Positions 5,849 through 32,850 of a stretch of DNA of 64,000 nucleotides are shown here, one piece after another. The position numbers and the translations under genes are program-made. Position 1 is the first letter of the stretch. Each line of letters opens with the position of its first letter. Source of the DNA: Klebsormidium nitens (Eukaryota > Plantae > Klebsormidiophyceae). The stretch spans positions 1-64,000 of the forward strand of contig DF237089.1 of assembly GCA_000708835.1 (NCBI GenBank). The letters are read 5' to 3'. Under the pieces are notes generated by a model. That model ran no database searches. It was not told where the DNA came from and saw nothing but the letters and a program-made list of their open reading frames with translations.

Positions 5849-8800
5849 TCACGTGCAGAAGGGTTCCGCTGCGGGTTCCGATGGGCAGGACCCGCGACAG
5901 CAAACGGAGGCCGAGCCAGCGGCGTTGAAGCACTGGCGACATACAGAACGACACGTGTCAACACGGTCCCGGAGAGCGGTCAGCTGTGAACGGACCACTG
6001 GCGACTCCATGGGGCAAAGGCAAGTGTCCATTAAAGTTCGAGAAACATAAGCAAGGTAGATTACGATACGGGCACAGACACTGAATCAGAAGAATTTTCG
6101 TACCCCAAAGACCTACGTGCTCCGCACCCGTACCGACATTGACCCCCAAAGTAACCCCACCCGTCTCCCGGGCTTGGCCTTCTTATTCATGTGGCTTACT
6201 TCTCAAAGAATCGAGACTTCTCTTGTGTCCTGCTAATGAAATACCGACGACGTACACGGGGGAGGACATATCAGAAATAATTACGCAGCCTCCTATAAAC
6301 CATCACCGGCGGGGCGTGTTCTGACCTGGTTCGGCTTCTCCGACTGCGGGTCGCACAGTGCCCCGGGTGCCGGCGCCGGCGCGGGGCCCGGACCTCCCGT
6401 CGCTCTAGGCGTTGGTGTCGGACTTTGGCCAGACTCTCCGTTGCCAGGAGGTGGCCCTGCAGTTGCCCCGGTCGCTGTCGGCGTCGGGGTTGGCGTCTGG
6501 TCAGACTGGGTGCTTCCTGGAGCTGGCCCAGGAGAGGCCCCAGTTGCTGTCGGTGTCGGTGTGGAGGTCTCTTCAGACGGCCCGGGAGCTGGGGCTGTGC
6601 CCGGTACCTCGGACGCCGGTGGGGTCGGCCCAAGAACGGGTGCCGGTGCGGACGCCGGGGGAGGCGCCCCAGGGGACTGAACCGGGACGGGGACACCGTT
6701 GACCTGGAGGGTGGAGGGAGTTTTCATTTGGAACCGAGGGCACGCCGAAAAGGCCTGTGTCATGTAGTCAAAATCACGGCTCTTACAGGTGAAAGGTTTG
6801 CGCAAGCGCTCAGATGTGAAAACCTCCAAGGGGTTTAAACACGATTAGTTGGGAAGGTGAATGTGACTCGACAGATACCATGACCAGGGATTATAAGACT
6901 GTGCTTATCATGGAGCACTTGCTTTTGCACCGCTTGTGTACTTTGAAGATGGAGCGCACCGGAATGGATTGTGCTTTCCGCGTTTAAACAAACCTGTTCT
7001 TGAAAGAAGCAACATGCACCCGGAAGATTGAGCTTCAGCCACGGGCCGGTCCTCAAGAGGGGCAGATCTCTAAGAGGGGCCAATGCAAAAGAAAAGGCAA
7101 CACGGGCGCTCTCCGTCGGGTCTTGTCCTTGTTTTGGGGCTGGACTAGATCTCTGTCACGACGATGAAGTATGAATTCCGTGCCGCTCACACTCAGTCTC
7201 GTTGGCCCTACGCCCCTGTTCCTCACCACCTTTGGTGGCTTCGCTCTTTATTTTTCTTATTATCAACCTCTCATTACGGGCTACTTTTGAATGTGCGCTG
7301 AAAGTGATGAGAATTTCCAAAAGGCCTCCGTCTACAGACATGCTCGGGCGGCTTTTATGCTGCTCGTAAAATCAAAACATGAATATCAGCACCTTAAGCT
7401 CAGGCTAAACATATTCCGCCACGCTGTCGTGACATTTGATATGATCTTTCCGCTGAGTCGGCCTCCATCTCAAGCACTTTCCCCTCAACGAATTATTGTC
7501 TGAACGTCTTTCCGGTTATCGGCAACCCGCAAATCGTGACGTCAGCCTACCTGGAGCTCCAGGTGGTTGGCGCCGCTCTTGGTCGTCAGCGACGCCGCGC
7601 ATGACGTTGTGAACGACTTGGAGAAGACCGTGCTGACGTAGCAGTACGTCCCCTGTGCGCGCTCGGGGGTCAGGTCCAAGATGACGTAGCCCTTGCTGTT
7701 CCACTCGAGGTAGCGCTGGTGCGGGTTGTCCTGCTGGAACACGGGCGTCAGCACCTGCGCCACTTGCTCGGCGGCCGTGCCCGGGCCGCCGGGGCCGCTG
7801 CAGGCGAAACACAAAGAGGCGTGTTAGAATCTTCGATCTTGAGCCATGGGAAAGCGTGCGCAGCAACTGTAATATCTGGTCTGGATGTGCTAGAACGGCG
7901 CTGCCACGACCAAAGCGGTACATGCCGCAAAGAGGTGTCCATGTCTGGCCTATGAAACAGAGCCGCTTGCCGCCCCGTTGACGTCGGCTTCGAGAGCAAG
8001 GCGACGTGTCAAGCTCAGCTGTAAGCAGCTCACTAGAACGTCTCGATGCTCGACGGTGACGACACGGCTGTCGTCAGGAACTCGACGGCGAGGGACCCCG
8101 CGCCTGTGGCCGGGTCGTACGCGCACGCGGCCGCGTCGCGCGTGGCACAGTAGCCCCCCGGATAGGCGAACCGGGGCAGGTCATTGGCAATGGACGAGTG
8201 CGTGTCGCCCGACAGGAAGACCACGTTGTCCATGTTCTCCGCCTGGAGCTTCGCCAGGATGCGGTCACGGTTGTCTGCGAAAGAGGGCGCGGCGCGCGCA
8301 TCAGCGGGTTAGTCTGTAGGATGCGGTCGGTTCTATGAGAAAGGGATGGGTGACGTCGCGATTGAGCGCGCGCATCAGCGTGGCGGTTGAAAATCTCGCC
8401 GCGCGTGGTCCGCTGGAAAGTCTTGAGAGCCAAGGTGGTCGAATCTTGGCGGACATCATTTGGAAATCGGCGCCACTTGAGGTCCGATCATAGCGCCTCG
8501 CTTGATGCCCGCATATGCCGATGATCCGCTAGAAAAGCATAGCAGACAACCAGAGGCCGTTTTGTATCGTTTCCGTTTAGCACAGAATAACACCCTCATA
8601 TGACTCGCGGTACAAAGCGGTCAGATGTTGAGGCGGGAAGGAGGGCAATTCTGCATACCGCTGAGCAGGCAGCCATCCTGAGAACAATTGAACGGTCGCG
8701 CGCAGCAGGCAGTGTGGAATCCCTGTCTTCCGCACTGCCTGCGTCTCAGCTACACGGAAGCATTTTGCATTGCAGAACATTCGAATCGCACGCAGGGCTT

Positions 8801-11800
8801 ACGCGTTTCACCACGCTAGCCTTTGGCAGAGCCCGCCAGCGCTTACCGGCATACCCGTCCCACGCGTCGAAGTTGATGACGGGCGTTATGCCCAGCTCCG
8901 GACGGCCTCTGGTGAGGAACTGTCCAAGCACGACCTGCTGTCCGATGACCTTCCATGTGACGGCGCGGGACTGGTCCAGCTGCGCGTACAGATACTGCTC
9001 CTGGTAATCGCCCAAGATGGTCCTGTGCATGGACAGCGGTTTCAAGACTAGAGTGCGACAAAATTAGTGAGCAACTCACCCTGGGACGGGTGGGTTTACT
9101 TTGGGGGTTAGGTGGGCATGCGGAGGAGGTAGGTTTCGGGTTTGTGTTTTACTGTGTTAGCTGGGAGCTTCCTATTCCTGAGCCCTTTCTATTCTTCTCT
9201 GTGGCAGAAAGGCTAAGCTGAAAGTTTCTCGACAATAGCAAAGGGGGTTTGCAAGAGGCATTCTGAGACGCTGATCCTGATCACCTTGACTATGTTATAT
9301 CAACCGGAGTACGTGAAAAGCATTCGATGTTGCCAGCAGTTCCTTCTATTCGATACGGACGGATCCTGGTCACTGAGCGAGAAAGCTCCCTCCGGCGATA
9401 AAAGTTGAAGTCCCAATCAACGCTCCAAACCCTGAACAACAGGCCCGATCGACGATCCAGGAACGAACGTTGGCGCCCGGACACATCAACGCTCCGATTT
9501 GTTCGACAACAGGTCCGGCGAACGCTCCAGATTCGTCGTTGACTAAGCTCGCCCACCTGCCCGGAGAGGTGGCGACCGCCAGCTGTGCCGCGGTGTTGTT
9601 CACGCCGGGAAACGTGGGGTCGTCGACTTGGATCTGTCGCCCGTACACTCGGGCGTCGAGCATGGTGAGGTGGACCAGGCTGCCGAAGTTGAAGGAGCGG
9701 AAGATGCGGGCGGGGTCGGTGGGGTCAACCTGGCCGACCGGCATGTACTCGAAGTAGGCCTGCATGGCGGCCGACTGCGGCCGGTGCAAGGCACCGGGGT
9801 AGGGAGCCGTTAGTGAACGTCGTATTGGGGAAAGTTTCGATGAGGCATCCTACAGTCGAGCCTGTTGCGAACACCGGCGCCAACAAACTTTGACGCAGAC
9901 CGCAATAGCTCTGACCTGAAAATCTCCTCTGATCAAACTAGAGTAACCGCAATGACTGCCTTGGCCAGTCGCTTCGCAAGCTGCCCGGGCCACGAACACA
10001 CCTTGCAGGCAAGGCTTTGATACCAGTTCCAAGAGAATTGGAAAAGAACCGTTTCATTTTTGACTCCGAGCTGTGCACAAGATGTGTCCATGTAGCAGGG
10101 CCTTACCTTCCGAGCAGCCCAGGAACCCTCGGTTGCCGGGTTATGGTTTGCGGCACCGCCGGCCCAGGCGTTATCCGCAAAGTCGTGGTCGTCCCAGACG
10201 GCGACCCATGTGTGCTTGGCGTGGGCTGCTTGGGCGCCCTCGTCAGTTTTGTACTGGGCGTGACGGGTCCTGTAAGGGAAAGGAAAATTGTGGTCCGAGC
10301 GGCTGGAATAATCAAGCCGGAGGTCGGCACTCATCAAGGCGTTCAAAGTTCCAGCAATTCTGAAAGTCCCCAGGTCATGACGGCTTTGAGAACGCGCCCT
10401 CAGGGAGCATTAAAAGCATTTTGATTTCCTTAGGAGCCTGAGGTTGTAAAGGCATAATGGTGCCCTGGCCTCAAAGACGGAGAAAAATGCTGCGCAGCGA
10501 GCTCAAGGGCGGGAACGGACCCCACTTTCGTATTTGGAGTTTTGTTTGCAAACGTCGATGCCATCGCCGTTCGGATGGTTTATTTACGAGCCTGATGCAT
10601 TCTTCACTCAGACGTGCAATTGCAGTGCGAAGAAGGCCGACGTCTCAAGGAAACACAGCAGTACCAAGGGGGTCACATTGCTTCATTCTATGTCTTGATA
10701 AGCGATTGATGAGTGACATCACTGCCTGGAGAAACGGACGCTGTGGATCTGGGGGTTGGCAAGTCAGCGCTAGATGTCATAACGGGGTCCATTTCCAGCG
10801 AGTCGTTCTTTGGTCTATCAGAATCACTTTCTAAGCGCTCATCCTAGGATCAAGAACCATTCTGAAGCGCCCGCCAAACCAGACTTCGCCACCAAGTGAG
10901 GCCAGCATTTTCCGAGCCCGTGCCAGTGGACTCAGTGGAGTGGCAGGGACATGTCACCGTTTTGTGTCTCCGTGCTTTTAGCAAGCCCCGCTTTGGGCCG
11001 CTTTCCGACCTTCTTATGGCCTCATTCGGGTCCCCTCGGACGCGCAACATGCAAACCAAGCCGCAATCCCTGCTTCGTGTCTTACCGGTAGTCACTCAGA
11101 GTGACGAGGTCCCTGTCGGGCTGCGGCGCGCGGGAGGGGTCCACCGCTGCAAAACCCGTCCCGAACTCCCCCGACTTATACTCGTAAATGTAGTCCCCCA
11201 GGTGGAGAACTAGATCGACGTCTTGGGACGCCACGCTCTGGTATACGTTGAAGTAGCCCGCCGGGACGTTGGAGCACGAAACGACCGCAAAGCGGACGTG
11301 GCTGACGTCACCCTGCTGCAGGGTTTTGAGGCGGCCTGGAGGGGTGGGGGATGTGGGAGGTGAGCGGTGGGAGTGCATAGAGGATGACGTGAGCTTGAGC
11401 TGGTAGACTTGTGGAGTGGGGAGCTGAGTTGTGGGGAGTACTCATGAGGAGTTGTGATGTTCAAGTACTGAAGAGACGTTGTACGCTCCAGTCGCCCCCT
11501 CTCTCACAATCTCAAGGGCGGTCTCTGCAGCACAGAGACGAACGCTTACCGGACTTTGAAGGTCTTGACGACGTCCAATGGAAGAGATTGCGGCGTACTT
11601 GTTTCACAAAAAAATGGTGGTCCACGAATGCTTCACAAAATACCAGAACTTGGCTTTCCAAACCAAATGAGGCATCACAAGAGATATCAATGTCTTAGAC
11701 AACTTGGACATGTTGCACTGCCGGCTCCCGTATGCCGGTGAATGATCCGGACCCCTAGTATGTGCCAAAAGTTGGACTCTATGCCTCGGCACGGTTCAAA

Positions 11801-12402
11801 GCACAAGTGGTGAGAAGCAACAATTTGAACAGGGCAGCAAATCCGCTGGCCTCGAAATCAACCTGACACTCACCAACAGGCGACTTGACATTTCCCGCTT
11901 CGTCCGAGAACTGGTAGTAGTAGAACTGGCCACCCAGCTGCAGCCCCCCCACCGTCACCTTCACAGTGAAATCTACCGCCGATGACGTCAGCGTACTCCC
12001 TGACATCACCACGTCGTTCATGCCCTCGTCGCTTGCGACTGCAAAGTTCACAACAATGCTGCCCGGGAGGTCACTCGCCGGGGTGCCTTTAGTCCACAGG
12101 ATCGCTGTCGCTGCGTAGGGGTACGTTGTGTAGTCCACCCCGGGGTCACCACTGGCCACCCCGTGCAGGAATGCCACAGCGGACGCTTCTGCTGCCAGCA
12201 ACTGCCGCGCTGCCCGGCGGGGGTGCGCTGGGTACGGCTTCGCAAGGTCGGGGCGTGTTGTGAGGGGGGAGAGGTAGTTCAGGTTGGGAGTGGAAGCTGC
12301 TTGGGAGGCAGGCACCCCAGCAGTAAGGAGGGCGGCCAGCAGGGAAAGGAAACGAAGGAGGCATGGCCGCGGGGCGTTGGTACTGCGGCCACGTGACACC
12401 AT
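5849..12402 (-). CDS. phoD: Secreted PhoD-family alkaline phosphatase/phosphodiesterase with C-terminal Pro/Thr linker and Cys-rich tail (~761 aa, 9 exons)
   Basis: Exons (minus): 12402-11874, 11335-11086, 10269-10107, 9774-9557, 9022-8847, 8274-8034, 7797-7551, 6703-6326, 5932-5849. All introns are GT-AG, phases are consistent, and the total is 2286 nt. Motifs: FLHGVASGDP, VVSCSN, LHLGDYIYEY, WDDHDFADN, QAYFEYMP, MLDAR, DAWDGY, LSGDTH. Hydrophobic N-terminal signal LLRFLSLLAALLTAGVPASQA. Confidence 0.93.
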
Positions 12403-12643
12403 TTTGGTACGCGTCTTGGGGGCGTTGAAGGGGATCCAAGGGAGCAAATGCTGCGTTGACTTTTCAGTTGCAATGTGCTGCGTAATATTTCAGTTGCAGC
12501 TTGCTGTGGGAGCTCATGTGCGTGCGCTGCACTGAACGGGCGCAGAAATGGCTACACTCTACTGATCAGCTGATTAACTTTATTCGTAAGAATGTGCTGT
12601 AGTTCGACATATTGCGTAGTTGTTGCATGGCGCGTTGGGGCTT

Positions 12644-16143: not shown

Positions 16144-19100
16144 ATGGCATTCGGCGGCGGTCCAAAGCCCGGGGAGCCGGTCGTCGGGTGGTGCGACCTG
16201 GGCTTTGCGGTGATGACGCCCGGGTGGAAGGAGAAGCAGGTGCTGACGTCACTCACCGGGTTCGCGCGGGCAGGGAAGGTGCTGGGGGTCCTGGGGCCAT
16301 CGGGGTCGGGGAAGGTGAGCTTGCGTGCGGGGCAGAGCTGAGAGACTGGTGTGAGACATGTTGTCATGTTACAGAGCGTGCTGCCAGTGGTGAAAGTGCG
16401 TTCTGGACAAAAGTGCTAGCTTGTGTGAAAGCTGGGCTAAGTTTGGGGTCTGTGCCTGTGAGTGAGCACAAATATCCTCAGTACAAAACCCCCTCCTAAG
16501 GTCCCCTGTGACAGTGAACAAGCCAGATGATTGAACGTTGGTGTAAACGGGCAAGTGAAACCTTTGATCTGCATGCGCTAGCTCAGCCAGTCCTTTTGGG
16601 GGGGTTGAGCTGAGGGTTAGCTGGTGGGGAGGGCTTGTTCGGTGGTCTGATTGGAAGCCTGACGGAGACGCAAATGTGACATTTCCTCTGTAAGGGCCGT
16701 TGCCAGGACACGATGTTGGGGGCGTGGCGCAGAATTGGGGGCTAAATTTGCAGCGACACAGACCCGCATGAACTTGCAACCCCTGGTCGTCAGCAAACAT
16801 CACTCAAACATCAGTCCCTGTGCTTGGGAAATGCTTGAAGCAGGGGTAGGGATTTGAATGGGGTAAGGCACACTCATTGCCAACCCCCCGGTCCCCCGGT
16901 CTACTTTTCTGGACTTGTTTCCGCACCCTAAATTACAACAGCCGGGAGGGCCAGAAAATTCTGCCATTGGAGAATATTCTGATTCCTGGACGCCCCGATG
17001 AATCCTCAACTCCTTTTCCGCAGAGTACGTTCCTGAGCCTGCTCGCCGGTCAGCTGGGCTGCGGCCGTATCACATCGGGGGAGGTCCGGAGCGCAATCGA
17101 CGGTCAGGAGGACAGCGACATGCTCATGTACCTGGTGCCGCAGGAGGACTGCCTGCAGGCCCACCTGACCGTGCGCGAGCTGCTGACCTACAGGTTGGGG
17201 GGGGATGTCACACCAAATTCAGGGTTCTAGTGCGGTGGAGATGCGCATGCAGTTGTTGTGTTGACATCTGGCCTCAATTCGTGTGTCGATCTGGAACTGA
17301 TCTGGACCATCCAAGAATCGAGAGGTGGGGGGCTGCTACTGCATGTTTGGCGCGTACTTTGAAGTCTTTAGTGTGGCTGAGATTGGCGCATGCAACCGTT
17401 TCAGGTTGATCTGGTGGTAAAGCTGGTGTCAAACTGCTGGAGATTCAGTGTCGATTTTAGTTGTTCTGACCGATTGAGAAGTGCCGACCAATACGTAGAT
17501 CAGGATGCGTCAGGCCCCTCGTGAGTAGACAAAGTTGTTTGGTTGTTCGACACAAACAAACATTGACGTCCAAGGCCCTGCGTATGGTGATGAGCGCTTA
17601 AATGACGACAGTAAATTTGTGATTTGAGCCTAGATAATTGAACATTTTTAAAGATTTTCCGCTTGTTTTGGAAAGCGTATGGGCGCACCGTTCTGGTTTG
17701 AAGTGGCGTGTTACATCAACAGCAAGTTGGGGCCAGAAGCGGCGCAGCTTTTAATTGTTAATTTAAACCCCGGAGTCTGGATTATTGCCAAGGACACGTA
17801 TAGTGTGGATCTGCGGGTTCGTGAAAAGGAGCCGCGTTAGCCTTTACGTCTCAATCCCATTCTGGGGATGCGTTGGACGGTCAATCGAAGTCAATTCCAC
17901 TAAAAACTTTCCTATGATTATCTCTATGGCACTTCTTACAGAATCTCGAATACTTGGAGCCACAACTTATCTCTGCGTCTTGCGTTTCGCTCCCCTGAAC
18001 GGGTTACTTGTACTCGGCCTGAATTACCTCAAACGAATGAGTGACCCATTAAGCTCGTCGGTGCTCAATTCCCCACCCCGTGGCGTACTTCTTCAAGGGA
18101 CGCCAAAACGACGTCATGCTGACGTTGTTCCAAATCCGATTCCCCCAGCGCCCGGTTACAGCTCCCGAGGGCGCGCCCCAAAGTCATTGCCGCCCGCGTG
18201 GAGGCGACAATCGACGCCGTCGGCTTGACCAAGGTTGCGCGCTCGCGCATTGGTGGAGTGGCCGGAACCAGCGGCGGGGCACCCCGGGGGATCTCGGGGG
18301 GGGAGCGGAAGCGGCTCGCCATCGCTGGGGCGCTGCTGTCAGAGCGCCCGGTGCTGCTTCTGGACGAGGTAAGTAGATTCTCACAAACTTAGCTGGAGTC
18401 TGATACACTTGGGTCGACCCCTCAGTCTGCTCCCCGGGGGGTCAGCAAGCTCGCTCTTCATTGCTTAACTAACCAGAATTCAATGACGTTGGGCGGACTC
18501 CCGCTGTCCTTCTTTTGGACAAGGTCAGCGAGCTTTTGGTTTTTGTTGATATGCCAGCACCAATTCTTTGAAAAGAATCTCCAAGGACGAGGAGAGTGCG
18601 CCGTTTCGCAAGTGGGTCTGCGGACATGGAAATCATCTCGGGAAGTCTGCACAACCGACAGTCCGGAACCCGTTTGCCTGTTGCCGGGGCCAGATTCAGG
18701 TTGTCGAACTGTACTCGTTGTGAGTCCCAAAACAGGAACGAACTATAGTCGACTCTCTCAAACTTGACCAGTGATGAACGTCTTTTCCGTTTCTCTCTGA
18801 TGGAGCCTTTCAATCAGCTTCAGTGTACCGCTTTCTGCCCTCTAGTTTCCGACATGCCACGCAGCCGCCGCCGTGTTTGATCATTCGACTGCCTCTAAGC
18901 CACAAAGCACACTGTGCACATTTGCACGATGTACGTGACAACGGAACCGTTGAGCCCGGTGCAAGCCTGTCTGCTTCTTTTGGTGCAGCGCTTCCCTACT
19001 TCACCCGCTCGATCCTGCGCACTCCTTAACGTCCGGCCCGGATTGCTCTACCCGTTTCGAGTCGTAAAGCCGTCGTATGCATATTTACGCAGACAATCGA

Positions 19101-22100
19101 CCCCATTTCCCCCCGAGCAAGTGTCTCAGCCAGCTTCGAGATCCCGCCATTGCCTGTCCTGACATGCTTCTGAAGATCCGCATCCCGTGCCGGCGACGTC
19201 CCTGAACCTTCGAGTGGATAGTCTCCATAGCATTAGTCGAAGCAACCAGACAATCAGACCCTTTCACCTCGTTTTTCCCTATCTGTTAGCTCCTGCCCTG
19301 ACTCACATTTGGACGTCCGCGTCCCACGCAGCCGACGTCCGGGCTGGACGCCACGACCGCGGCCAAGATCCTGGCGCTGTGTTCGGACATCGCGGCGCGC
19401 CACGCATGCGCCGTCGTGCTAACGGTCCACCAGCCGCGCCGGTCCGCCTTCGAGCAGCTGGACGACGTGCTCCTCCTCTCGCATGGAAGGTCAGCCTCTA
19501 AACTAATGTCATCCAATAAGGGGATTAGTGAATCATTATTGAAAAACAATGGGCCACAACGGTTTTGAAATCTGCTGCTAACCCGAAGCCGTAACCCGGT
19601 CCAGTGAAACACAATTTGAATGAACGAGCTTAGGTTGAACTGGTTGCCAATGGAAGTTGAACTACAAGGAGGCAGAACGACCGGCAAGCTACTCGCTCAG
19701 ATTACCCGCTTGGTTAGAGCTTAGAGGGGACCGCTCGCACAGTAAGCACTTAGAAGAAGCGCTGCACGAGAGTGAACCTGGGCCGGCAGTACCTGAAATT
19801 CGATAAGACGAGCAAGATTGGCTGACGCTGGAGGGGCTGAAAATCAAGCTTTCTCTTTGACAAAACACAAATCAACCTCGAAGCATTGATTTTCTCGAAC
19901 ATGCTGGAAATGGCCTTCAAGCCAGCCTTGAAAAGATGGAGAATTCAGAGCTCTGTGCTAAAGTAACCTGGTTCCGCCCGGCCGCGCAGGACGGTCTACT
20001 TCGGCGCGCGCGGGGAGGCCCTGTCGGACTACTTGCAGTTCCACCTTCTCCTCCCGCCGGAGCTGGTCGTCTCTTCCAATCGAGCCAACCTGCTTCTTGA
20101 TCTGGTGGAGAACTACGAAACCGGGGCTTCCACCGCAGTCGAGACAGCGGATTCCGCTGCCCTGGAGGAGCCGGACTCGCCAGGTTCGCAGGAGCGGACG
20201 ATGCTCGCAGCGAATCGCACGAGCGAGAGCTCCGACTTTGAGGAGGAGAGCGGCCCGCTGGACTTTGGTTCGGAGGCCTCTGCGGACGCCTCGTTCGTTG
20301 ATCGAGACGGTGAGCGGACGGTTCAGCGTACGAATGACTGGCAGTTGGCAATCGGAAGCGGTCCGTACGATTCTTGTGAGTTTTGAAGTATGCTGAGCGG
20401 GAGGTTTGCATGGAAGCGACTGAATTTGGGTATGCTCAGCCGGCTGATCGCAGGCGAGAATCCAGACCTGGGTGAGTGGGGATGTGTGCGCCTTGACAGG
20501 CTTACAGGCTTACAGGCACCAATCCGTCTCGTTTTATATGATCCTTCAGCATTCGAGGATAGCATGCCGTTTGCTTTTGATTTCTATAATGTGTGCGTAG
20601 AATTTAAGGCCCCGTCCAAGAAAGAACGAGATTGCCCCCGATCCAAGAAACTTTCGCTTTTGCTTCTGAGAAACGAGAGGCCAATCCCACGTAACATTAG
20701 TGTCACCAACCGTCTTGATTAGCCGGTCGAATCCGAAACCCTCTCAATCTCAATTGTTCGATCATCTTTTCCGGCTCTACTTTGGGCTCTCGCATCCAAA
20801 CCACCGCATCTCGGCGCGCTCCCCACATTGCAATCCTCGGCTCCTCAATCCACTCAGATTTTCCTCTCGCAATTTATTTTTACCCGTTGTACGGTTTTTG
20901 CTCCCTGCAGGCCCCATGCTCCGCCGCTCCTCCAGCTTCGACACCAACAAGCACCTGCTCGCGACCGGTACCTTCCCCCGGGCGGACCTGGTCGCCGCCC
21001 ACGAGTCCTCCGCCGGGCACGCCGCCGCCCTCAAAGTAGCCGGGGACTTGCCCCACGTGTGGACCCCGGGCTCTAACGAGTCAACCTTCAGCCTGCGCAG
21101 CGCAAAAATCCTGGCGGCCCGGAGCATGCGCGCGGACCTATGGAGCGACCCCACGTGGCTTGTCACCATGATCGCGCACTCCAACATCGTGCTGCTCGTG
21201 GTCGGGACGCTCTTCTGGCACGTGGTGAGCGGGATGGAGCCGGTGCAGCGCGCGAACGCACGCGCACAATGCCCGCCCCACTAGAAATATCAGGAACAGA
21301 TTGGAGCAAGCTTCAGCCTCCATTTTCCGTTTATCAAGCGCCAATTCTCACGTCATGATACCGGCGAAGTTGCGTCGGCGAAAAGACGAAGGAAAATCTC
21401 TTCTTGGATGATTCAGATCGTCTGTTCACAACTAAGTACATACACCCTCTAAGCTCCAAGTTGTAGATCGGGAATAGTCGAGAAGCGCCAACCTTCTTCT
21501 AAATCCTCCGTACTTGGGTGGTGCAAGTTCACTTAATCTTCGAAAGAATGGAGCGCCAAAGCGGAGAAAGGATGTTAAAGTATTCGGCTGGTCACCCAAC
21601 CGCCCCAAAACCACCCCGCTCCGTATGCTTCCATCCGTTTTTGAATCAGTCACCTTGAGGAAACTCCATACTCTGCCTGGTTTTGATGAGCGCTTGGAGT
21701 CTTACATTTTGTGGTTTTGACTGCCGTCTTCCCCTTTCCCACTGCAATGTAGCTTCGATCCAAGGAGACTTTCTAAGATTCTGTACGAGGAAATTCTCGA
21801 TTCTTGGTACCTCCAATCACACGTTTGACACGTTTCTCACAATGGTGCGTCCGTCGCCTCTTGGCAGCCGTCGACCCTGGGTGGCGTCAGCATCGCGGCG
21901 GCGGCGCTGCTGCTCGTCCTCACGTTCGGCGCGTCATTCACGTGGCATCGAACAGAGCGCGCGGTCCAAATGATTACAACATTCCAGGTGGGTCGCGAGA
22001 ATGAATAATGCAAGAAGAAAGATGAGATAGAAACTAAAAACGCAGTTATGCACAGCTGAGCAAAATTCTAACAGTGTTGTGGATGGTAATCGCTTATACA

Positions 22101-24120
22101 ACGGCCGGCAATTGGCACAATAGAGCCGAAGCAACAGAAGACAGGGAAGCAAAATCGTAGACAAAAATGAGTCACGGTTTCAAAAGAAGGAAAGAAACGG
22201 ATGATAAACACGGGCGCATTTCATCTTTCTGATCCAAGATGCAGACTGAAATGCAGGTGGTCTGTGTTTGTCCCCGTTCACAGCTTCGGACGCTTGAAAG
22301 GCCCCGTACGCAGCGCCAATGTTGCTTGCTACATGATCCTTCTCGATCCAATTCCAGTCATGGAATTTCGCATCGTATGGCCGTCATTCCCAGAAGAATT
22401 TTCGCGCGCCCCCCCTGTAAAACCCTAGAATCCTGACCATTCCCGCAGGCTGAGCACGCCAACGGCCTCTACGCACCCGCGTCGCTCGCGCTCGCGCGCA
22501 CCGTGTACGACGAGCTCATCACCGCGGTCGCCCACGTGCCACCCTACCTGTACTACTACTGGCTGGTCGGCCTGCGCGCGAGCACGAGCGCATACCTGAC
22601 ATTCATCTTCGTCATCTGGGTCTCCATGAGCACTTTCAACCTGTGGACTGTGACGTTGGCGTTCGTCAGCGGGAGGGACTGGCTGGCCACGCTGATCAAC
22701 ACGTCGCTGCTCGGAGCGTGGACACTCACGGCCGGTTTCCTCGTAACCTCTAGCCAGATACCCGTCTGTGAGTGACCGCTACTGGTAACCTTTTCTTGAG
22801 GTTTTCCCGCTCAATTCGTCGCCGTAGCTTTGACCGTTTGGAGGTTCTCTCGAGATGAATATCAACTACGTCGCGGTTGTTTCGGTTGGTTGGTGAGCCT
22901 CTCAAGATTGACCAGTACTTTTTCGCGTTGCCCCACCGACTGATCGGTGAGTACTGAGAGCCTGCGAAGGCAGCCGATATCTCGCAAAATACCTCTTCTC
23001 CAGGGTCCATATTCTTTAGATTTCGAAACAGCTATTTGGCTTGTATGCTCTGATGGGCAACAATTGGCGGGAGATAAGCCATGTCTTTCCATGACTCACT
23101 TAAATCTGCTCATTGAAGCATACAAAACACAGCCGCATTCCTTGACACACCAATATCGAAAAGGGTCTTTGCTCAAGAACGCAATGACGTTTGACAGTTC
23201 TCGTAAGAGGGCGTCGGCCTTTGCTTTTTTCATCTTAAAACAGAGCCCCTCCGTGAGCGAATTGGGCAAGGACCAAGCGTGCGTCGCCCTGACTTGTCTG
23301 TCGAGGAAAGAACGGCCGTTAACACCGTGTACGGGGGCCCCGCATTCTGGGCGCTCAAGAAAACGCCTTTCCAGCTGTCCCGTCATCTTTCGGGAGGGCC
23401 TTAACAGCATTGGATCATCCGCGCCACTCACCTCCCACGGACGTCCAAATTTCGCAGGGTGGCGGTGGCTCAACTACGTGAACCCTGTCCGGTACGCCGG
23501 ACATGCGCTGGTTCTGAACCAGTATGCGGACATGGGGCCCGTGTCCGACTGCCTCGACTCGCAGCGCGTGCCCGCGCTTGTGGACGGCACCCTGGTGCGC
23601 GGTGAGCAGCCCCCGGTGGTCGCCCTTTACCTTCCACCCGACTCCAGTGGGCGTCTTGATGTAGCTTAAGGGGCAATACCTCTTAAATTTCAGAACAAGA
23701 TCTGGTAATCTCTCCTCCAACTTTCTAGGGGTCCTTTCTCCAACTATGCTCTCCTTCATTTCCAAAGATTCTACCCGCTCTGATATCCTCGCCTTTGGCC
23801 ACTTTTACTATAATCAACTCCTTTCATCCTTGTCATGCGTCTCTTTTGGGCCAATGTCTGGTACTTAACCGTCAAAGTGTAGAATCTAGGATCTTGAGCC
23901 AATATCCAATCCTGAGACTCCGTGCCTTCCAGCCTGCCCCGACGGCCTGCAAATTGTGACGGCGCTCGGCATGAAGCGCACAGTGCTGTGGAACGTGGGC
24001 ATCGTGGTCGCCATCAACCTCGTGTCGCGCGCCGTTTTCTTTGCCGCGCTCGCGATGCGCGGCTACGTCACCTCCTCCAACCGGCACACCATGGCGACGG
24101 CGGCCGCGACCGCGCGCAGG
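16144..24120 (+). CDS. ABCG (White/WBC-type) half-transporter module, NBD-TMD order; exons 1-10 of a probable ABCG-lipoxygenase fusion gene
   Basis: Exons 16144-16314, 17024-17193, 18149-18368, 19332-19489, 19990-20309, 20911-21224, 21868-21987, 22449-22767, 23458-23601, 23933-24120. Walker A GPSGSGKST, Q-loop VPQED, signature ISGGERKR, Walker B/D-loop LLLDEPTSGLD, H-loop TVHQP. TMD motifs: GTLFWHV, EHANGLY, AGFLVTSSQIPVWWRWLNYVNPVRY. Confidence 0.95.
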
Positions 24121-24573
24121 GTGAGCAGTTCGTTGGAGAACTGGACGGAGGTAGAGCTTGTGTGCCTCCTTCCAAGAGGTTCTCGTGGATCTTACAAGTG
24201 GTTTAGTTTTTAGCCTGCTCGGAATCCGGGCTTCGCTTGCAACATACTGAGAGGGGACGTACAGGTCCACTCGGAGTAAGTTGGATACAAAATCTATTAC
24301 AGTTTGATACAATGCGCGCTTGATCCTCGTCTCTTCTTATAAAAGCTACAACTCACGCTTCTGCATGCAAACTCGCAGAGCGAGACCCTCTGACAAATCC
24401 TTCCCTCTTCATAACTTTCACAGACCTGGCGGACTTATGAGGGCTACCACCTTGACAGCGACTGATTGGCGGTCTAATGGTTTCTTTCTAATCGAGAAAC
24501 CGCCGTCCGTGAACGCCCAAACTTAGCTCACACTTGTACCAGATTGCAAATTCCTGTTATGTATTCCTTTCAG

Positions 24574-27500
24574 AAGACGTCGGAAGGACTTACAGAGACC
24601 TCCGGCAGCTCCCCGGGGCCCCGCAACGACGACGTCGAGCGGGCTTTGCCGCCAAGGGGCTCTCAACCGGTTGCTACGAAGACAGCGCGCCGCCCCGGGG
24701 CTCTCACCCGAGCGCTCACCCGGATGCTGCCGACGAGCCAGGCCGCTTTTCTCCTTCTGGGCATCCTCAAACTCGCAATCGTCGTCGCTTTCTCCGCCTA
24801 TTTTTTCCGAGAAGTCGCCCCGGAAGAGTCCCCGAAGTATGGATGGGCAACCGGGACAAAGAGCTCGTACCCGGCCCTGTACGGGTACGTTGAAGCGAGC
24901 ACCCTTACTGTGGACGACGTCCTGGAGTACGACAGGTACAGGGTGGAAGTGGTCGCACCTCACGTGAAGCTCTGGAACACGCTATTCCCCCGAGTAGAGC
25001 CGCCCATCTACCGCGCGGAAAACGACTCCCTTGGGCCCGACAAGGAGCTCGGGTCGTTTCAGGTCAGTTTTCTGGCTGGTGATCCCTTCTTACTGTGGTA
25101 GAGAAGCAATCCGGCCAAGGTGAGACCAGTCCAAAAGTACTCTCAGAATGAGAAGGCGATTCACATTCCTCCAACAGATTGAAGGGCTGAATTCGGAGGC
25201 AGGTTGAAGGGTCGGAATGAAAAACGGCGTCCCACAGAGCACTGAATTCAGGCCAAGCCATTCGCCGCAAATGTCAAAGATGCTGTAGATCTCTCCACCA
25301 TCTTTCCTCAATCACTTTCATCCGATGGTAGGAGAGCTTTTGAAGGCCTGATGCGCGCGTTTCTCGTCAGTCTTCGAATCTACTTTCTCGCTCCAGATCC
25401 TTTTTAATGTGTCAGGGGAAATGATCTGCCGATGAAACGTTGAGATCGTTCCGGTCACCTATCGGGCGGCCAGTCAAGCACTGCCACGTGGCAGGCCACA
25501 ATATGCAGATGCCGTTTGCTGCCACAGCCAGCGGGTGACGTCACGGGTGCGAAACTTGGCCACCACCGCTAGCCAGCGTCGCGCCCACATAGGTATCTCC
25601 TATCAATCGGTTATGATTTTGTTACACGCTCTTTCTTTCAGGAACTGTTCCAAGTCTTTCCCCGGGGATACGACATCGGGCCCCAAGACCCGGGAGCTCA
25701 GATGAAGGTAAGAGTTCTCGCTTCCTGTTTCGAATGGAAACTTGACCCCACGTGGAGTCAGAAAGTATCGAAGGAAAATGGTTTGACTGTTTGTACACAC
25801 TTTTGGGCCCGCAAAGAGTGCGGGTTTAGACTGGAATGCAAGCAGTCACGCCTTATGCGAAAAGACCTAGAACTACATTCAAAGTGACCCTGGTGCATGA
25901 AAGCTCGACCACCGAGTTCACGGGGGTGGTCCTTTCAAAAACTGCTCGGTCCAAACGGGTTGCAGCCATAATTTTTGTCTTATTAAACCCTCAGTAGAAG
26001 GGCGCGAGGCGCTCAAATCACTAGACGCTACCACATGAACACTTGCCTTAATGCTTAGTTCCCTTCGTGCTTCCTTCGTCTCTCAAAGTAAGTGCTTCAT
26101 AAACCCACGGTTACCGATCAGGCGGTTGCAAGAATCATGACTGTCGATTCCCTCTCTTCGCGCAGTGGTTCATGAACGACACCGGGGATGGCGCGCTGCT
26201 CCTTCGCATCATGCAGATGTCGGGGGACGACCAGTGCTTCTCCCGGCTGACGACTTTGCCCCCGGTAGACAGTTTCCCGGTCGCCACATCAACTGGCGTG
26301 CAGGTGTTCCTGCAGCAGACCCTGCGGACCACCTGGGGCAATGCTCCAACCACTCTGGAGCAAGCTCTCAGCGCTGTGAGCCCCTCCGGAATCTACTAAT
26401 GCTCTCACGAAGGCTTGGTGATGTTTGATTGCAATTATGTTGGCCAATCGTTTTGGAAGCAGCATGGCGGCTCTTTAAATCGTGAAACCTTCGCACTTCA
26501 TATCGTATGTGTTCCTCATGAGTACGTCTCGAAGCAGATTTATGTCATTTGTGTCATTAAGTTGAGATATGTATCCGGACCACGTTCCAATGAGGCCCAA
26601 TTTTCTTGAACCACGGTCGAGTCACCTGATCTGGCAGAGTTTGAGATTGACGGTGACTCAAGGATTTCCTGACAAGCATCCGCTATTGTTCACTTTCACG
26701 GGACCCCAAAAGTAGCTTAAGATTCTGCGTGCCCTGCGTTAGAATCATATCATCAATTGGAATCGGCAAAAATGCGCAAAGATGTCTGCACGATGACGGA
26801 AGAGAAGGTCGCAGGCGGTAGACAATACGGCACTCGGAATTGGCTTGGAGTCAGTCACCCGTCGACTTCGGTTGCTTTACAAGATAAGATTGCTGCAAAC
26901 ATCTGCTATTCTCCTGGTGCTCCGTTTTACAACGGTTTCTTGTGGGTCTGCTTGACAACTCTAATTGGGGGGCTTTGAAAGTCGTCACCCAATGACGGTC
27001 TGATCATGACAGAGAGTTTCAGGGAAGGTAGCGGATTCCAACGCTCAAAAGTTCGAACTCCATCCGATGCAGGGTCGTTTGTACATGGCGAACTACTGGT
27101 TCCTGGAGAACGTCGAGCACGACATCGGCTACACGACCCACGCCCCCAAGATCCTCTTCTATCTGCTCGACTCCGGAGAGCTGGTCACCGTGGCCATCCA
27201 GCTGGGGCAAAACCCGAGGTGGGTTTGCTCGAAAGCCTGCGCTTTGGCTTTCTTACCCATTCAAACCCCATTCTTCCCAACTTACTGGGGTTGGCCGGTT
27301 TACAGGAGGAAGATCTTCCTCGGATGCTCGGCGGTTACTCCCCTCTCCTAGCTAGGTAATGTAGGTAATCTGAGGAGAGTCCATTTTGGCGTTGAAGGGT
27401 AGGGGCGCTTTGATGTTTGGGTATAATCTGACACTATCCAGGGCCATTTCGAAACATCTTTACAAAGGATGAGTATTGAATGCGATGGTTGAGGACCTTT

Positions 27501-30270
27501 AGGACCGGCCAAGACGGTCCTTGCTGTTGACGATCGTATCTCAGGTCGGAAGCGGCGCTCCCTGTTTTCTTCCCCGATCTGCAGATGAAGCTACGCAATA
27601 CCCAGGAAGTGGATGCTCCAGTGGTTTTGCAAAAAGTTGACACAATTGTTACGATGTTTGCAAGATGTGGAAAAGGTCACGTTCAGATTGGGTTGCCATG
27701 TTTTCGGGGCCGTTGCGCACCAGCTCTGTATTTGATTTCGAGGTCCGTCATCGAGAGTGTATGCTTCAACATACTGATTCCTAGCAAGCTCTGCAAAGAC
27801 CGGGGCGCGGCGCACAGACATTCCGTCATCAGATCCTGGTCGAGTATCTTCTGCACAATGCTTCGCAATTCCCATTAACATCCCGCCCCGTCGGTGGCAG
27901 GCAAGCGCCGCTCATCACTGCGTACGACGACGCGCGCGCGACCGGGAACCCCTGGAACTGGTGGTACGCTCGCGTGTGCGCGCGGCACGCAATCACCATG
28001 TCAGCCAACTTCTATCACGTGGCGACGCTTCATTGGCCGGTCGAGACCGTCCGGGTGGCGCTGAATCGGGCGCTGTCCGAAAGCCACCCAGTCCGGGCGC
28101 TGCTATACCCTTTCATGGGCTACGCGTCCGTGCTCAACACGGCAACCAGGGTGCCCGGAGCGCTGCCGCTCAAACTTACCGGGCAGGTACGATACCTGCA
28201 CTGAGCGCGCGTGTTCTCAGCGCAAGGTAATGAAGGTCTTTTCAAATGGATTGGGCCGGTGATCTGTGTTCCACCGGGGACATGCAGGCGCCGTGGTCAA
28301 CGGACGGCGCAAAGCTTCGTCTCGGGTTCCACACGGTTTGGCTAAGCAACAAGTAGACGGACTGGAAGCAATCAGCTATCTTTTGCCGTTGTCACATGAA
28401 TCTTCAAATTCTCGTAATGCTCCGTTAAGCAGAGTAGGATAGCGCAAACTTCCTTACACGGCTGGGTGCGTGAACCGTGCCGTCGACGCTCGCAGCTCGC
28501 GGCCCCCCATTTCTCCTGCTCGAGTTGCCCAGGCAGTACAAAAGCAATTTGAACGGCTCAAAAGCTAGAACGTCCATCACAAGTCGCGGGACGGACGTGG
28601 GTGGTCAAGCATACTCTGATGGAAACGCGAAGAGCTGTCATTGATAAGCCGATAAGACGTTAACATGAAGCGCAAACTTCCAATGACGGGGGTCTCGATC
28701 ATTTCTTGCAGGGCCAGGCCACTCTGGTAAGCAACATCCTGGGCAATACGAGCTTCGTCGACTCATACGACTACGTCGCCAGCCTGGAGCGGCGCGGGCT
28801 GACCGCGCCGGCCGCAGGCGCGCCCGACTTCGCGGAGGTTTCGGAGATGCGCGACCTCCTGATAGCGCTGTGGGGCGTCCAGGATGACTTCGCGGCCGCG
28901 TTTGTGAACGCCACGTATGCGGAGGATGCTGACGTGGAAGCCGACGCGCCACTGCAGGTGGCTATGTTATGCAAACCCCTGCCTAGTTGCGCTGCGTCTT
29001 TTTCGGCTCCGCGCATCCCCAAAATGGACAGGAAAATTTGCAGGTTTCTTGCTCCAGTTTTGAAGGCAGTGCAGTTGGCGTGCTATGCTATTTCGATTCT
29101 TACGAGGAGACTCAGGATTGGAATCCAGTCCTCTCAGACTGGGTGATGATCTACAAGTATTGTCTCTCCTTCTAAGCTGCTCGACCTTCTGAGTTTGCTG
29201 CTCGAAATCGAAGTCTTTGTGAGGCAACAACTGGACAATCTCACGTCATCCCTTGAACGCAAAACTACTGCAATTCCTCGGTCCTCTAATCTGATCCCTT
29301 CTATATTCCAAGGTCTGAAAGGTCTTCAGAACCGGTCATTAAACCGGTTTGTTACCCCCGCTTCCCCACCCAGGACTTCGTCACGGAGCTCTCTCACCCC
29401 GACCGCGGCAACTTCGGCAACCTGACCCGCTCAGGGCAAGTCGCCACCCGGGGCGATCTGGCTGGCGTGCTGACCCGCCTCCTCCACCGCCGGGTCATTC
29501 ATGGAGCAGCGGGTGAGTTCCACACTATCCCCTTTGCTGTTCGTTCTTGGCCGCGCACGCGAAAATGGAGAGCCTTCGGACGCCACGCCGAACGCTCTTA
29601 GGCGCCTCGGAATAACAATTTGAACGCCACGTAAAAAGCTTTTGGACGCCTTCTAGACCTAGTGGCACCTCTCGGCGCTCCAATTCGGACGCCCTGGTAG
29701 CTAGCTTTGGGTAACACTCCGGACGCCCTGGCAGCACCATGCGCCGGACCCGTTTGCCCCGAAACCAGATTTGAAGTCCTCAAATTGCCTTCCCATCAGT
29801 TGCGACTGCAGACCAATACAGCGGTGAGAGCAAATCACAACCGAAGGAAGACCTCTCGCTTTACGTCCTCTCGCCTCCTCTAGATCGATAAAGGGATCTC
29901 GATCCAGAAACCGTCCACGTGGCGCCTTGCAGGCCCGGTATGGCAGGCCCAGGCGATCGTGTACCCGACCACTTACGTTCCGGTGCTGCGGGCGGCGCCC
30001 CTGCTGGGCCGGATGCAGGAGTCCACGCTCCTCAACGCATTCGGCACGCGCCTCGACGTCGTCGAATTCCTCGACTTCTTTTTCTTCGCCCTCGCGCCCG
30101 CCCCGAAGCCGATGGCCGCCTGGCAGGGCGGGGACTTCTTCCCCGGGGGCTCGGCCCTATCGGCGCTGGTGGACGAGTACATCGGGAACACAACCGCCGC
30201 CCTCAGGGCGCACGATCGGAACGGCACGTGGAACATCGCGGCCACGTGGGGGGGCCTGACCGCTGGGTGA
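24574..30270 (+). CDS. Membrane-anchored lipoxygenase-like domain (no PLAT domain seen); exons 11-17 of the probable ABCG-LOX fusion
   Basis: Exons 24574-25062, 26166-26375, 27073-27218, 27901-28186, 28712-28957, 29374-29512, 29933-30270; phases consistent. LOX-like segments: DKELGSFQ, GRLYMANY...APKILFYLLDSGELVTVAIQLGQNP, WWYARVCAR..HVATLHWPVE..ALNRALSESHPVRALLYP, LERRGL, YAEDADVEADAPLQ, LTRLLHRRVIHGAA. Hydrophobic helix AAFLLLGILKLAIVVAFSAYFF precedes them. Confidence 0.85.
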
Positions 30271-30381
30271 TCGTGTTGGGAATGGAAAGATTGGTCACTT
30301 GACCCTTCTAAGTAGGTATCTTCCAGAAGTTCATGTTTTTTCCTACATACACTGACGTGCCAGCTTGACTTGGGCTTTGTA

Positions 30382-30444
30382 GGATAGTCTTTATGGGATA
30401 GGCTTTATGGGATAGTCTCTATGGGATAGGCTTATGGGAAATAG
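30382..30444. repeat. Short tandem repeat, ~14-bp unit ATGGGATAG(T/G)CT(T/C)T, ~4.5 copies
   Basis: GGATAGTCTTT ATGGGATAGGCTTT ATGGGATAGTCTCT ATGGGATAGGCTT ATGGGAAATAG, starting about 110 bp after the LOX-module stop. Confidence 0.85.
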
Positions 30445-32721
30445 TGATGTAAACGAGTTGCAACGTCGCTTTGACGCTGAATTCTGCAGGCTAGCAGTGG
30501 CAGCTTTGGGTCCGGGTCCAACATGAGGTCTAGTACGATTAGACAGTACTTTTTCTTGTGCAGGATACTCAGTTGTTCTAAAGACGGGTCTACAAAGAGA
30601 CAGGGTTGCTCGCTAGCTGCATAGCTCCACCAACTCTAGACAGGTCCCAGGTGTTGCGTGCACCGTTGTTAGGTTCATCGTCTCAGACAGTCGCATCGGA
30701 CAGGTTAATGCAATCACTTGGCCGCCAGACTTTCTTTCCTAATTGGGAAATCAAATCACACGCTTTCTCTTGACAGACACCTTTTGATAAGCCATCTTTC
30801 GAGTCATGTTCAAGCTGAAATATCAGCAGACGGGCTGACGCGTCTATGTGAGTACGTGTGCCAGCTAATCAGAACAAAGACTGAAGGTACGACTTGAATC
30901 CTGCAATTCAGAACTCGACGTGACGGAAGATTGTAGTACGTGGTATAATCACGCATCATGGCTTTGTCTACAATAGGTCTACGTACCTCTTGACTGATAG
31001 ATTACCATGTCGGGTGTCAATCAATCATGAAGGGGAGGATTAGCAAGCTGGAAGAGACGTCCTTGAGAATGATCAAGCGAAAAGCAATTTGCCTAAACCC
31101 TGCCTAAGACCCACTCGGCATGCCGAGCGTATGGTTGGCAGGTCTGGCAGCGTGAGGCATGCCTAAGACAAGCCCAAAAGCAGCCTGATACATGCCTATT
31201 AAAGTGCCTGCGAAACCCGGCTGTAAAGTGTCACCTACGGCTTGCATGTTACTTCTGCCCAACGTCATCAATCTGGCACTTTGAAAACAAGGGACGACGA
31301 GTAGCATCAAGAGCGGGCCCGTCTTAATGCCAGCCGCAAATGTGCGCACACACTCAAGTCCTGCAAATTTGCGACCAGAGTCCGGCCAGAATAGCTTTAT
31401 GGTTCAAAAGCGTAAAAGCGGGACAGCGCATGGGCGCCGTGCAGCGATCATGCAAGTCATAATATGCACTACTTGAGCGTCTGGTCCCAGTAACATTGTG
31501 AATTCAGTATGTGAGTATATGCTTGTACGCGTTATATAACAAAGTGCTGGCTAGGCATAAGACAGGTAGAGCGCGGTGCGCATATTTCGGCCGCACGCGC
31601 TGCCTACGCGCTGGCTGTGCACAATTTTCGCGAGTGACTATGTTGGGTCGACGCTAGCTAAAGCTAGCTCATTTGCAATAATTACATGCAGATACTGTAA
31701 CCAATATGCATTTACGTGCGATTCGAGCAGCACGGAAGCTTGATCGAAGCACGATCGAAGGCCCCTCACAGGGAGTTTTCGCAGCTTTCAGAGTATTGTG
31801 TCTCACCGGACAAATAACGGCTGCGGTGCCTTTTGTTGACTTCCCGTTGCGGCTCCGCGACAGGCGCCATTGACTAAAAGAGTGTATCCAAACAATAAAG
31901 GTTCTTATCCAATATTGGCCGCTCAGGCCCGAGCTTTTTGCACTTCGACTCCGAGCGCCCCTTCACCTGCCCCTGCAATAGCTGGCGGCCGTTCTTTACA
32001 ACCTTCGACAATGACGAAATTTTAATTACTCATACGCAACAGTGCGGCACCGTGCAAGCGCATTGCAAATTCACTGGGTCAGGACTCAGAACGGGTCAAA
32101 GTGTGCCAAAACCGTGGCAGGACTACTTGGGAGACAAAAGTTGAAGAGACAAAAGCACAGAGATTCGAGAAGGAAGAGAAAGAAATCAAAGACAAGGGGC
32201 AAATAAGTTGACGGGCTTCGTATACGGTATGTTCCTCATGTATACGTACAGGGGAGCCACGTGATGGTTGAAACCTCAAACCCTTTGACCCGTTGGTGGG
32301 AGCATTTTGAAAAAGACGGCCGCGTTGCCGGAGCAGCCGGCCGCGTGACTGGGACATCTGCCTCTAGCGCGCTTGATTTATTGCATCATGCCGCAGCTCC
32401 CAGCCGCAGCCTACTACAGCTAGCTCGAGAACTTGCCAGATCGAGCGCTTTTCGAAAAGGAGAAGCCCCCCCTGATCAGTCAATTTGTTAGTTGCAAGTG
32501 GCGATGCGCTCTTCAATTGGATTACCTAGTACTACCTAGTAGAGATCTGACTTGCATTCTGGTGGTTGGAACATTTTAGGAAGGTTTTCTTTTAGGAGGT
32601 TGGGGCCAAGAGAGAAATCGTTGGTGCGCTCCTTCGCGGGATGCTGACATCCTAAGCAGTCATGTCTTCGTCGCCCCCCTCTCTGTTTCTGGCCAATGCG
32701 CCTCCCATCCCTGTTCCCCAG

Positions 32722-32850
32722 GACAGGAATGAGTACAGCACAACAGCCCTAGGCGTGTCTGTAGGGGTCACGGCCGGGCTGATCCTCTGCTGCATTGCCC
32801 TCGCTTGCTATGCAGCAGGCAGGAGGAGGAAGCAGCTCATCTATGTGTGA
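32722..32850 (+). CDS. Orphan terminal exon encoding a single TM helix and basic tail (possible extra 3' exon of ABCG-LOX, or part of a 62-aa ORF from 32662)
   Basis: Pyrimidine-rich acceptor ccctgttccccag, then DRNEYSTTALGVSVGVTAGLILCCIALACYAAGRRRKQLIYV*: a hydrophobic stretch followed by an RRRK stop-transfer. Confidence 0.45.
   Translation, partial: DRNEYSTTALGVSVGVTAGLILCCIALACYAAGRRRKQLIYV

Follow-up and report, generated by a model that had tools for sequence, protein, structure and literature searches.

Klebsormidium is a model for the adaptation of green algae to land. The window analyzed here is a stretch of 64,000 nucleotides (nt) of Klebsormidium nitens DNA (contig DF237089.1 of assembly GCA_000708835.1, positions 1 to 64,000, forward strand); the DNA is intron-rich, eukaryotic and of ~55% GC content. 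On the forward strand, from 16144 to 30270, it carries a gene whose reading frame runs from an ABCG half-transporter through a linker and a seventh transmembrane (TM) helix into a lipoxygenase (LOX)-like domain. The fusion is confirmed as a real feature of K. nitens: the in-frame junction is present in the genome and is used in RNA. It is very probable that the locus is one expressed gene that encodes all four parts (half-transporter, linker, seventh helix and LOX-like domain) in a single frame.

The gene model has 18 exons and a coding sequence of 4044 nt with a lone stop at its 3′ end, which gives a protein of 1347 amino acids (aa) with a predicted mass of 145.6 kDa. Exons 1-10 (16144-16314, 17024-17193, 18149-18368, 19332-19489, 19990-20309, 20911-21224, 21868-21987, 22449-22767, 23458-23601 and 23933-24120) encode the ABCG half-transporter, aa 1-708 (16144..24120); the remainder of the protein is carried by exons 11-18 (24574-25062, 25642-25707, 26166-26375, 27073-27218, 27901-28186, 28712-28957, 29374-29512 and 29933-30270, with the stop at 30268-30270). 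Exons 7-18, with all joints from exon 6/7 on, were taken from RNA: Logan contigs of four runs from the source organism (X1-X4) were placed on 21800-27700 and 26900-32800, and every placed contig was spliced and showed zero mismatches to the window. The joints seen were 21987>22449, 22767>23458, 23601>23933, 24120>24574, 25062>25642, 25707>26166, 26375>27073, 27218>27901, 28186>28712, 28957>29374 and 29512>29933; each joint from exon 7 to exon 18 has GT..AG borders and keeps the frame. To these the model adds six 5′ exons on the basis of the reading frame, of ABC motifs that are contiguous over every junction, and of identity to a public gene model. That public model came from a homologue search with exon 15 against 1.84 billion representative proteins, which recovered a 1347-aa protein (P0001) identical to ours: GenBank GAQ83218.1 / UniProt A0A1Y1I518 from K. 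nitens, named “ATP-binding cassette (ABC) superfamily protein.” The gene model is already public, then, under a database name that gives no sign of the fusion. Another of the three matches in this search, P0003, was a low-complexity repeat protein and was disregarded.

The fusion intron, intron 10 (24121..24573, 453 nt, phase 0, GTGAGC...TTTCAG), was spliced in RNA contigs of three of the four runs (X1, X2 and X4). A 4192-nt contig of X2 and a 1744-nt contig of X4 contain the joint 24120>24574, and each spans exons on both sides; run X1 splices to 24577, 3 nt downstream. In run X3 the contigs break precisely at 24120 and at 24574, as expected of an assembly bubble at a NAGNAG site; the acceptor is indeed a tandem NAGNAG (cag|aag, 24571-24576), which yields isoforms with or without Lys709 at the domain junction. 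Contig depth over the junction was similar to that of the flanking exons. Were the intron retained, the reading frame would stop at 24211-24213.

These data bear on a model-generated reading of the bare sequence (the original prediction), which had proposed this phase-0 junction, canonical GT-AG sites and one frame in one transcript; the RNA joints bear all of this out, with a frame open to 30270, and the two separate genes that it had named as the alternative did not appear in the RNA contigs. Its gene structure had to be corrected: it gave 17 exons, 3978 nt and ~1325 aa and so fell short by exactly one exon, a phase-0 micro-exon of 66 nt (22 aa) at 25642..25707 whose joints are seen in all four RNA runs. 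A further run with another organism label (X5, organism B) accounts for 8% of the 31-mers sampled from 23900-25100, and its organism may be a close relative with the same junction region.

Only two relatives of the LOX-like part were found, in a small number of eukaryote-capable searches: transcriptome open reading frames (ORFs) of K. subtile, at 58% identity, and a locus (L002) that a 98-aa exon product revealed on a genomic contig of 16.9 kb (run SRR23617307). A homologue search with exon 11 and a metagenome scan with a two-species alignment gave no match. L002 carries, on a single strand, colinear counterparts of exons 4 to 18, and it thereby supplies the instance of the same architecture elsewhere for which the original prediction had advised a search. 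With splice sites placed under the guidance of homology, all of its intron phases match those of K. nitens, and 9 of the 15 exons have the same length, the micro-exon included (66 nt, 7258-7323); the fusion intron is again in phase 0 (5795>6394). The introns after exons 7 and 16 have apparent GC donors in L002, at 3402-3403 (CAG|GCAAGC) and 11320-11321 (CAG|GCGAGT), where K. nitens has GT. Joined together, the 15 exons form one open frame of 1154 aa that is 47% identical to the K. nitens protein over 1166 aligned positions: 62% in the nucleotide-binding domain (NBD), 51% in the membrane domain, 46-52% in the LOX-like domain (as conserved as the membrane domain), 27% in the linker and 26% in the seventh helix.

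The junction region of L002 also bears on how the transcript is read. There is no stop at the end of exon 10 in either K. nitens or L002; where K. nitens has its start-like Met761, L002 has Tyr, so that a stand-alone LOX product has no conserved start codon; and a GSSPG motif in the linker, which in L002 lies upstream of any Met, is conserved. Together, these features argue for translation as one protein. That an organism whose protein is just 47% identical shares this architecture, down to the positions and phases of the introns, indicates that the fusion is old and under selection.

The ABCG part appears, from its sequence, to be an otherwise ordinary ABCG half-transporter. Pfam places ABC_tran at aa 42-190 (3.7e-21) and ABC2_membrane at aa 412-620 (7.9e-25) of the whole protein; the NBD is followed by a variable linker and a membrane domain of six TM helices, and this placing of the NBD N-terminal to the TM domain is the reverse order expected of an ABCG (WBC-type) half-transporter. 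Matches to TIGR00955 are colinear with this part, and the best PDB matches of aa 1-708 are all ABCG/PDR proteins (Cdr1, Pdr5, AtABCG25, AtABCG16, ABCG5 and ABCG2). All of the ATPase motifs are intact: Walker A (GPSGSGKS, 51-58), the Q-loop (VPQED, 95-99), the signature (ISGGERKR, 162-169), Walker B (LLLDE, 183-187, with the catalytic Glu within 183-193) and the H-loop (TVHQP, 218-222). The last outside loop holds two Cys, conserved in K. nitens and L002, as in other ABCGs. In its domain order, its ABC_tran and ABC2_membrane domains, its ATPase motifs, its six TM helices and this Cys pair, the protein resembles plant and animal ABCG half-transporters such as Arabidopsis ABCG25/ABCG16 and ABCG11/12 and human ABCG2 and ABCG5-G8. 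Of these, ABCG11/12 export cuticular lipids in Arabidopsis, and the structures of ABCG25 and ABCG16 have been solved. The solved ABCG half-transporters (651-736 residues), however, have no large domain after the sixth helix (TM6), whereas the K. nitens protein adds a linker, a seventh helix (TM7) and a domain of 560 aa.

The linker, which we place in the cytosol, comprises aa 709-764 (24574..24741); when aa 691-708 are counted in, TM6 and TM7 stand 74 residues apart. The linker has a basic composition (12 Lys plus Arg vs 5 Asp plus Glu). TM7 (aa 765-787, 24742..24810) holds the most hydrophobic 19-residue window of the whole protein, with a Kyte-Doolittle peak of 2.42, and its flanks, basic before and acidic after, agree with the positive-inside rule. 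The hydrophobic segment is retained in K. subtile and L002, in the latter with its length as well as its character.

These features allow the orientation of the LOX-like domain to be predicted. Because the NBD is cytosolic, six TM helices follow it and the Cys pair lies in the last outside loop, the end of TM6 should be cytosolic; from a cytosolic ABCG C-terminus, TM7 would then carry the LOX-like domain to the non-cytosolic face, that is, to the cell surface or to the lumen of an organelle. The LOX-like part has 7 N-x-S/T sequons vs 2.4 expected (P about 0.007), and 7 and 5 occur in its relatives; no such enrichment is seen in the cytosolic and membrane parts. On these topology rules, it is likely that the LOX-like domain faces away from the cytosol, on the side where the pump releases its cargo, and it is probably N-glycosylated.

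The C-terminal 560 aa (aa 788-1347, 24811..30270, from part of exon 11 to exon 18) clearly share ancestry and fold with the lipoxygenases, as judged by sequence comparison and a predicted structure. Pfam matches PF00305 (Lipoxygenase) to aa 955-1095 at 4.4e-16, with 59 bits against a cut-off of 23.6, in a match that spans just the central profile positions 246-394 of 673 (149 positions); in the K. subtile relative, profile positions 269-535 are matched with 36.6 bits. Against PDB sequences, 53 of the 54 distinct matches at E ≤1 were lipoxygenases (the other was a bromodomain, at E 0.9), led by coral 11R-LOX (2.3e-16) and Pseudomonas aeruginosa LOX (6e-13), with plant LOXs far weaker. A language-model feature search concurs with the assignment (0.96). 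Smaller pieces of the domain were less informative: Pfam gave no match on most single LOX exons, a PDB search with the last exon gave none, and neither did scans of metagenomes and prokaryote genomes with exon 15. A suggestion that exon 11 is UstYa-like (protein atlas, 0.89) was rejected, the weak matches reflecting the TM-anchor pattern alone.

An AlphaFold run on 11 sequences gave a poor model (predicted local distance difference test, pLDDT, 47.7) and was not used. With 15 of 19 bacterial LOXs taken from prokaryote genomes added to the input, the model of the domain reached a pLDDT of 73.7 and a predicted TM-score (pTM) of 0.75, with a confident core at domain residues ~110-545. Foldseek then listed only LOXs among its top PDB matches (TM-score 0.58-0.68, E down to 1.9e-16) and returned almost exclusively LOX entries from the AlphaFold DB clusters. 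No PLAT domain was found in the protein, either by Pfam or in the predicted fold. One AlphaFold DB match, A0A1Y1HND0, is a PLAT-less “Lipoxygenase” of 566 aa with an accession from a series that fits K. nitens; at 19% identity to the fused domain it does not, by sequence, qualify as a close paralogue.

Most of the domain predictions made from the bare sequence also held. The set ABC_tran, ABC2_membrane and Lipoxygenase was recovered in full by Pfam, and the ABC catalytic motifs are in place; the linker, put at ~55 aa, measures 56 aa between the junction and the extra TM helix, and that helix itself stands out by its hydropathy and flank charges. The C-terminal domain had been read as a lipoxygenase homologue, a reading that would have fallen with the lack of any lipoxygenase profile or structure match; Pfam, PDB sequences and Foldseek each provided one.

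The metal site is where the domain departs from its family. For this comparison, an alignment of the domain with 15 bacterial and two metagenomic LOXs was supplemented by separate alignments with ALOX12 and P. aeruginosa LOX (HMMER) and with the Nostoc LOX (BLASTP). In the first metal-ligand cluster, H1051-x4-H1056 (motif HVATLH, 28016..28033), both His line up with ligand His of ALOX12, the Nostoc LOX and 19 bacterial LOXs and are invariant in the three species; in the second, H1227-R-R-x-x-H1232-G (29485..29512), H1232 lines up with the third canonical ligand His. The position of the Asn/His ligand (+4 from H1232) is Gly1236 in K. nitens, Gly in L002 and Ser in K. subtile. The stretch that follows the conserved Arg/Asp-Asn anchor falls short of that in other aligned LOXs by 6-8 residues and ends in G, Q and Q in the three species, whereas among the other aligned LOXs (19 bacterial and two metagenomic) the C-terminal residue is Ile or Val in 20 of 21 and Ser in the remaining one. 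An extra His, H1227, stands five residues before H1232 and is invariant in the three species. His is the best-conserved residue type of the domain, with 8 of 11 invariant vs 38% of all residues.

The two ligand clusters have been described as essential for true LOX sequences (PMC6612559). By that standard, and as far as the alignments tell, the domain fails two defining features of a lipoxygenase despite its shared ancestry and fold, and since two canonical ligands are absent, the usual lipoxygenase chemistry is not to be taken for granted. The pattern is suggestive of a His-rich metal centre that has been rebuilt, and not of decay. In a tree of LOX domains, the three algal sequences group together on a very long branch away from the bacterial LOXs; the rooting within this trio, whose pairwise identities are 58%, 47% and 47%, is unreliable.

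The explanation that we favor takes architecture, orientation and mechanism together. A dimeric ABCG pump would export a lipidic substrate, and two tethered LOX-like domains would capture the exported lipid at the outer face and modify it chemically, by oxygenation or a related metal-dependent reaction; catalysis would proceed via the remodelled His-rich metal centre and not via the canonical iron site of 3His/Asn/C-terminal carboxylate. We give this explanation, taken as a whole, a probability of about 0.5. Its individual parts differ: the coupling of export to catalytic modification is tentative, with somewhat less than an even chance of being right, and its most specific form, in which every exported lipid would pass straight from the ABCG part to a covalently tethered oxygenase, extracellular, glycosylated and derived from LOX, with a new His-only centre (H1051/H1056/H1227/H1232), yielding oxidised or cross-linkable lipids on the surface of an early streptophyte alga adapted to land, is speculative and in all its details unlikely.

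Several observations weigh against this explanation, and they are taken here with the alternatives that they would favor. The RNA contigs are de Bruijn assemblies, which establish a splice junction and not a whole isoform, and depth downstream of the junction is 1.2-1.7x higher than upstream, which fits 3′ bias and leaves room for an extra LOX-only transcript. The locus might mainly make two separate proteins, one by retention of intron 10 with its stop at 24213 and the other from an internal promoter or start (ATG 24724), the spliced junction being minor read-through. Met761 followed by the hydrophobic helix could act as a signal anchor, and the K. subtile ORFs start near the corresponding place, with a Met inside TM7, so that they neither confirm nor deny a fusion in that species. 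There is also a low-depth 254-nt unspliced contig within intron 10 (24155-24408, run X1); a similar one lies in intron 12 (25867-26143, run X3), both at depth 3-4 vs 8-13, and because of this second contig we read the first as pre-mRNA background. The intronic contigs are consistent with pre-mRNA or with low-level intron retention in these libraries. Set against separate products are the junction contigs, equal in depth to the flanking exons; the lack of any contig that starts in intron 10 or exon 11 except at the splice site; and the phase-0 junction, open linker frame and retained GSSPG in a relative that lacks Met761 and, like K. nitens, has no stop of its own in exon 10. We consider two separate products very improbable. 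It is somewhat less so, yet still improbable, that the domain sits the other way around, with the hydrophobic segment anchoring it on the cytosolic face in place of PLAT and with lipids oxidised first and exported by the ABCG part afterwards. Known lipoxygenases are for the most part cytosolic, and it is the PLAT domain, absent here, that recruits them to membranes; iron loading would be straightforward in the cytosol. A 23-residue helix with the top hydropathy of the protein and flanks that obey the positive-inside rule argues for a membrane-spanning segment instead, as does a sequon enrichment confined to the LOX part in all three species; the nearest structures, moreover, include PLAT-less LOXs that are secreted or periplasmic (those of P. 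aeruginosa and the fungal Mn-LOX).

The remaining alternative accepts the fusion and concerns what the domain does: it may be a non-catalytic pseudo-enzyme, an outside-facing hydrophobic pocket that serves as lipid acceptor, lid or scaffold with no redox chemistry. The domain lacks the Asn/His ligand and the C-terminal Ile tail, which are two of the five canonical iron ligands; the three species have Gly, Ser and Gly in place of the former, and the shortened tail ends in nothing Ile/Val-like. The long branch of the algal clade and the Pfam match to just the central part of the profile point in the same direction. The structural model itself needs some caution, in that the first ~106 residues of the domain and its C-terminal 12 (pLDDT <50) are modelled with low confidence and the bacterial LOXs in the input alignment bias the prediction toward a LOX fold. 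On the other side stand the invariance of the three canonical His and of the extra one, the conservation of His above every other residue type, and a constraint on the whole domain that equals that on the transporter core. We regard a pseudo-enzyme as doubtful, but as a case to be taken seriously alongside the favored explanation of coupled export and modification.

Around the gene, no paralogues were found within the window. The upstream neighbor codes for a PhoD-like phosphatase; it lies at ~7500-12500 on the minus strand, in divergent orientation to the ABCG-LOX gene, and shows matches to PhoD_N (5.9e-18) and PhoD (4e-17 and 2.5e-16) on separate exon-sized frames. At the 5′ end of the fusion gene, an RNA contig reaches 1819 nt upstream of 21867, where the model accounts for 1353 nt, which implies a 5′ untranslated region (UTR) of ~466 nt or longer. 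The 3′ UTR occupies 30271..30760, the RNA contigs stopping at 30728-30760, and at 30375-30445 it contains a short tandem array of about four copies of a ~15-nt unit (tatgggatag plus 4-5 variable bases). From 32343-32800 onward, RNA contig depth is 49-78 vs about 10 (5-8x), so that expression of the transcribed gene that comes next downstream is much stronger.

The sequence is in public databases, and the fusion itself is without a description that we could find: the literature searched held no mention of an ABCG-LOX fusion, in keeping with the original prediction, or of accession GAQ83218.1 or run SRR23617307, and nothing in it reports a transporter to which a TM helix tethers a LOX-type domain. 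To our knowledge, LOX fusions are known solely with downstream soluble enzymes. The coral allene oxide synthase-LOX of Plexaura homomalla (PDB 3dy5) and the catalase-like/9R-mini-LOX of Nostoc sp. PCC 7120, which came up as a plasmid match, resemble the K. nitens protein in having LOX as the C-terminal module of a two-function polypeptide, and the LOX part of the Nostoc protein is likewise PLAT-less. In both, however, LOX is joined to a soluble enzyme that acts next in the pathway, and it keeps the canonical ligands and the C-terminal Ile; the K. nitens domain is attached to a membrane transporter, probably lies outside the cytosol and lacks two ligands. The PLAT-less LOXs of P. aeruginosa (4g32), of fungi (the manganese LOX, 5fno) and of Cyanothece (CspLOX2, 5med) resemble the K. 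nitens domain in consisting of the catalytic domain only, with fold TM-scores of 0.6-0.67 at 17-21% identity. Some of them are non-cytosolic, as the K. nitens domain appears to be, but they are soluble, whereas the K. nitens domain is tethered by a TM helix. The aligned bacterial LOXs, too, have an H-x3-N cluster and an Ile/Val-type C-terminus, both absent from the K. nitens domain.

This gene would thus represent a third kind of natural LOX fusion, one in which the partner is a transporter and not a downstream enzyme. A LOX fold with a rebuilt metal site bears on what that fold requires for catalysis, and since fused parts likely act in one pathway, each part hints at the substrate of the other. 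Surface lipids are present in Klebsormidium, and its genome yielded just some of the land-plant cuticle genes (PMC4927632). A conserved and expressed gene that joins a lipid-type exporter to a LOX-like domain, which probably faces outward, is a concrete, testable candidate for the modification of lipids outside the cell; if the most specific form of the favored explanation is true, an oxidising export machine of this kind might provide hydrophobic wall layers or secreted oxylipin signals along a route unlike the cutin/wax pathway of land plants.

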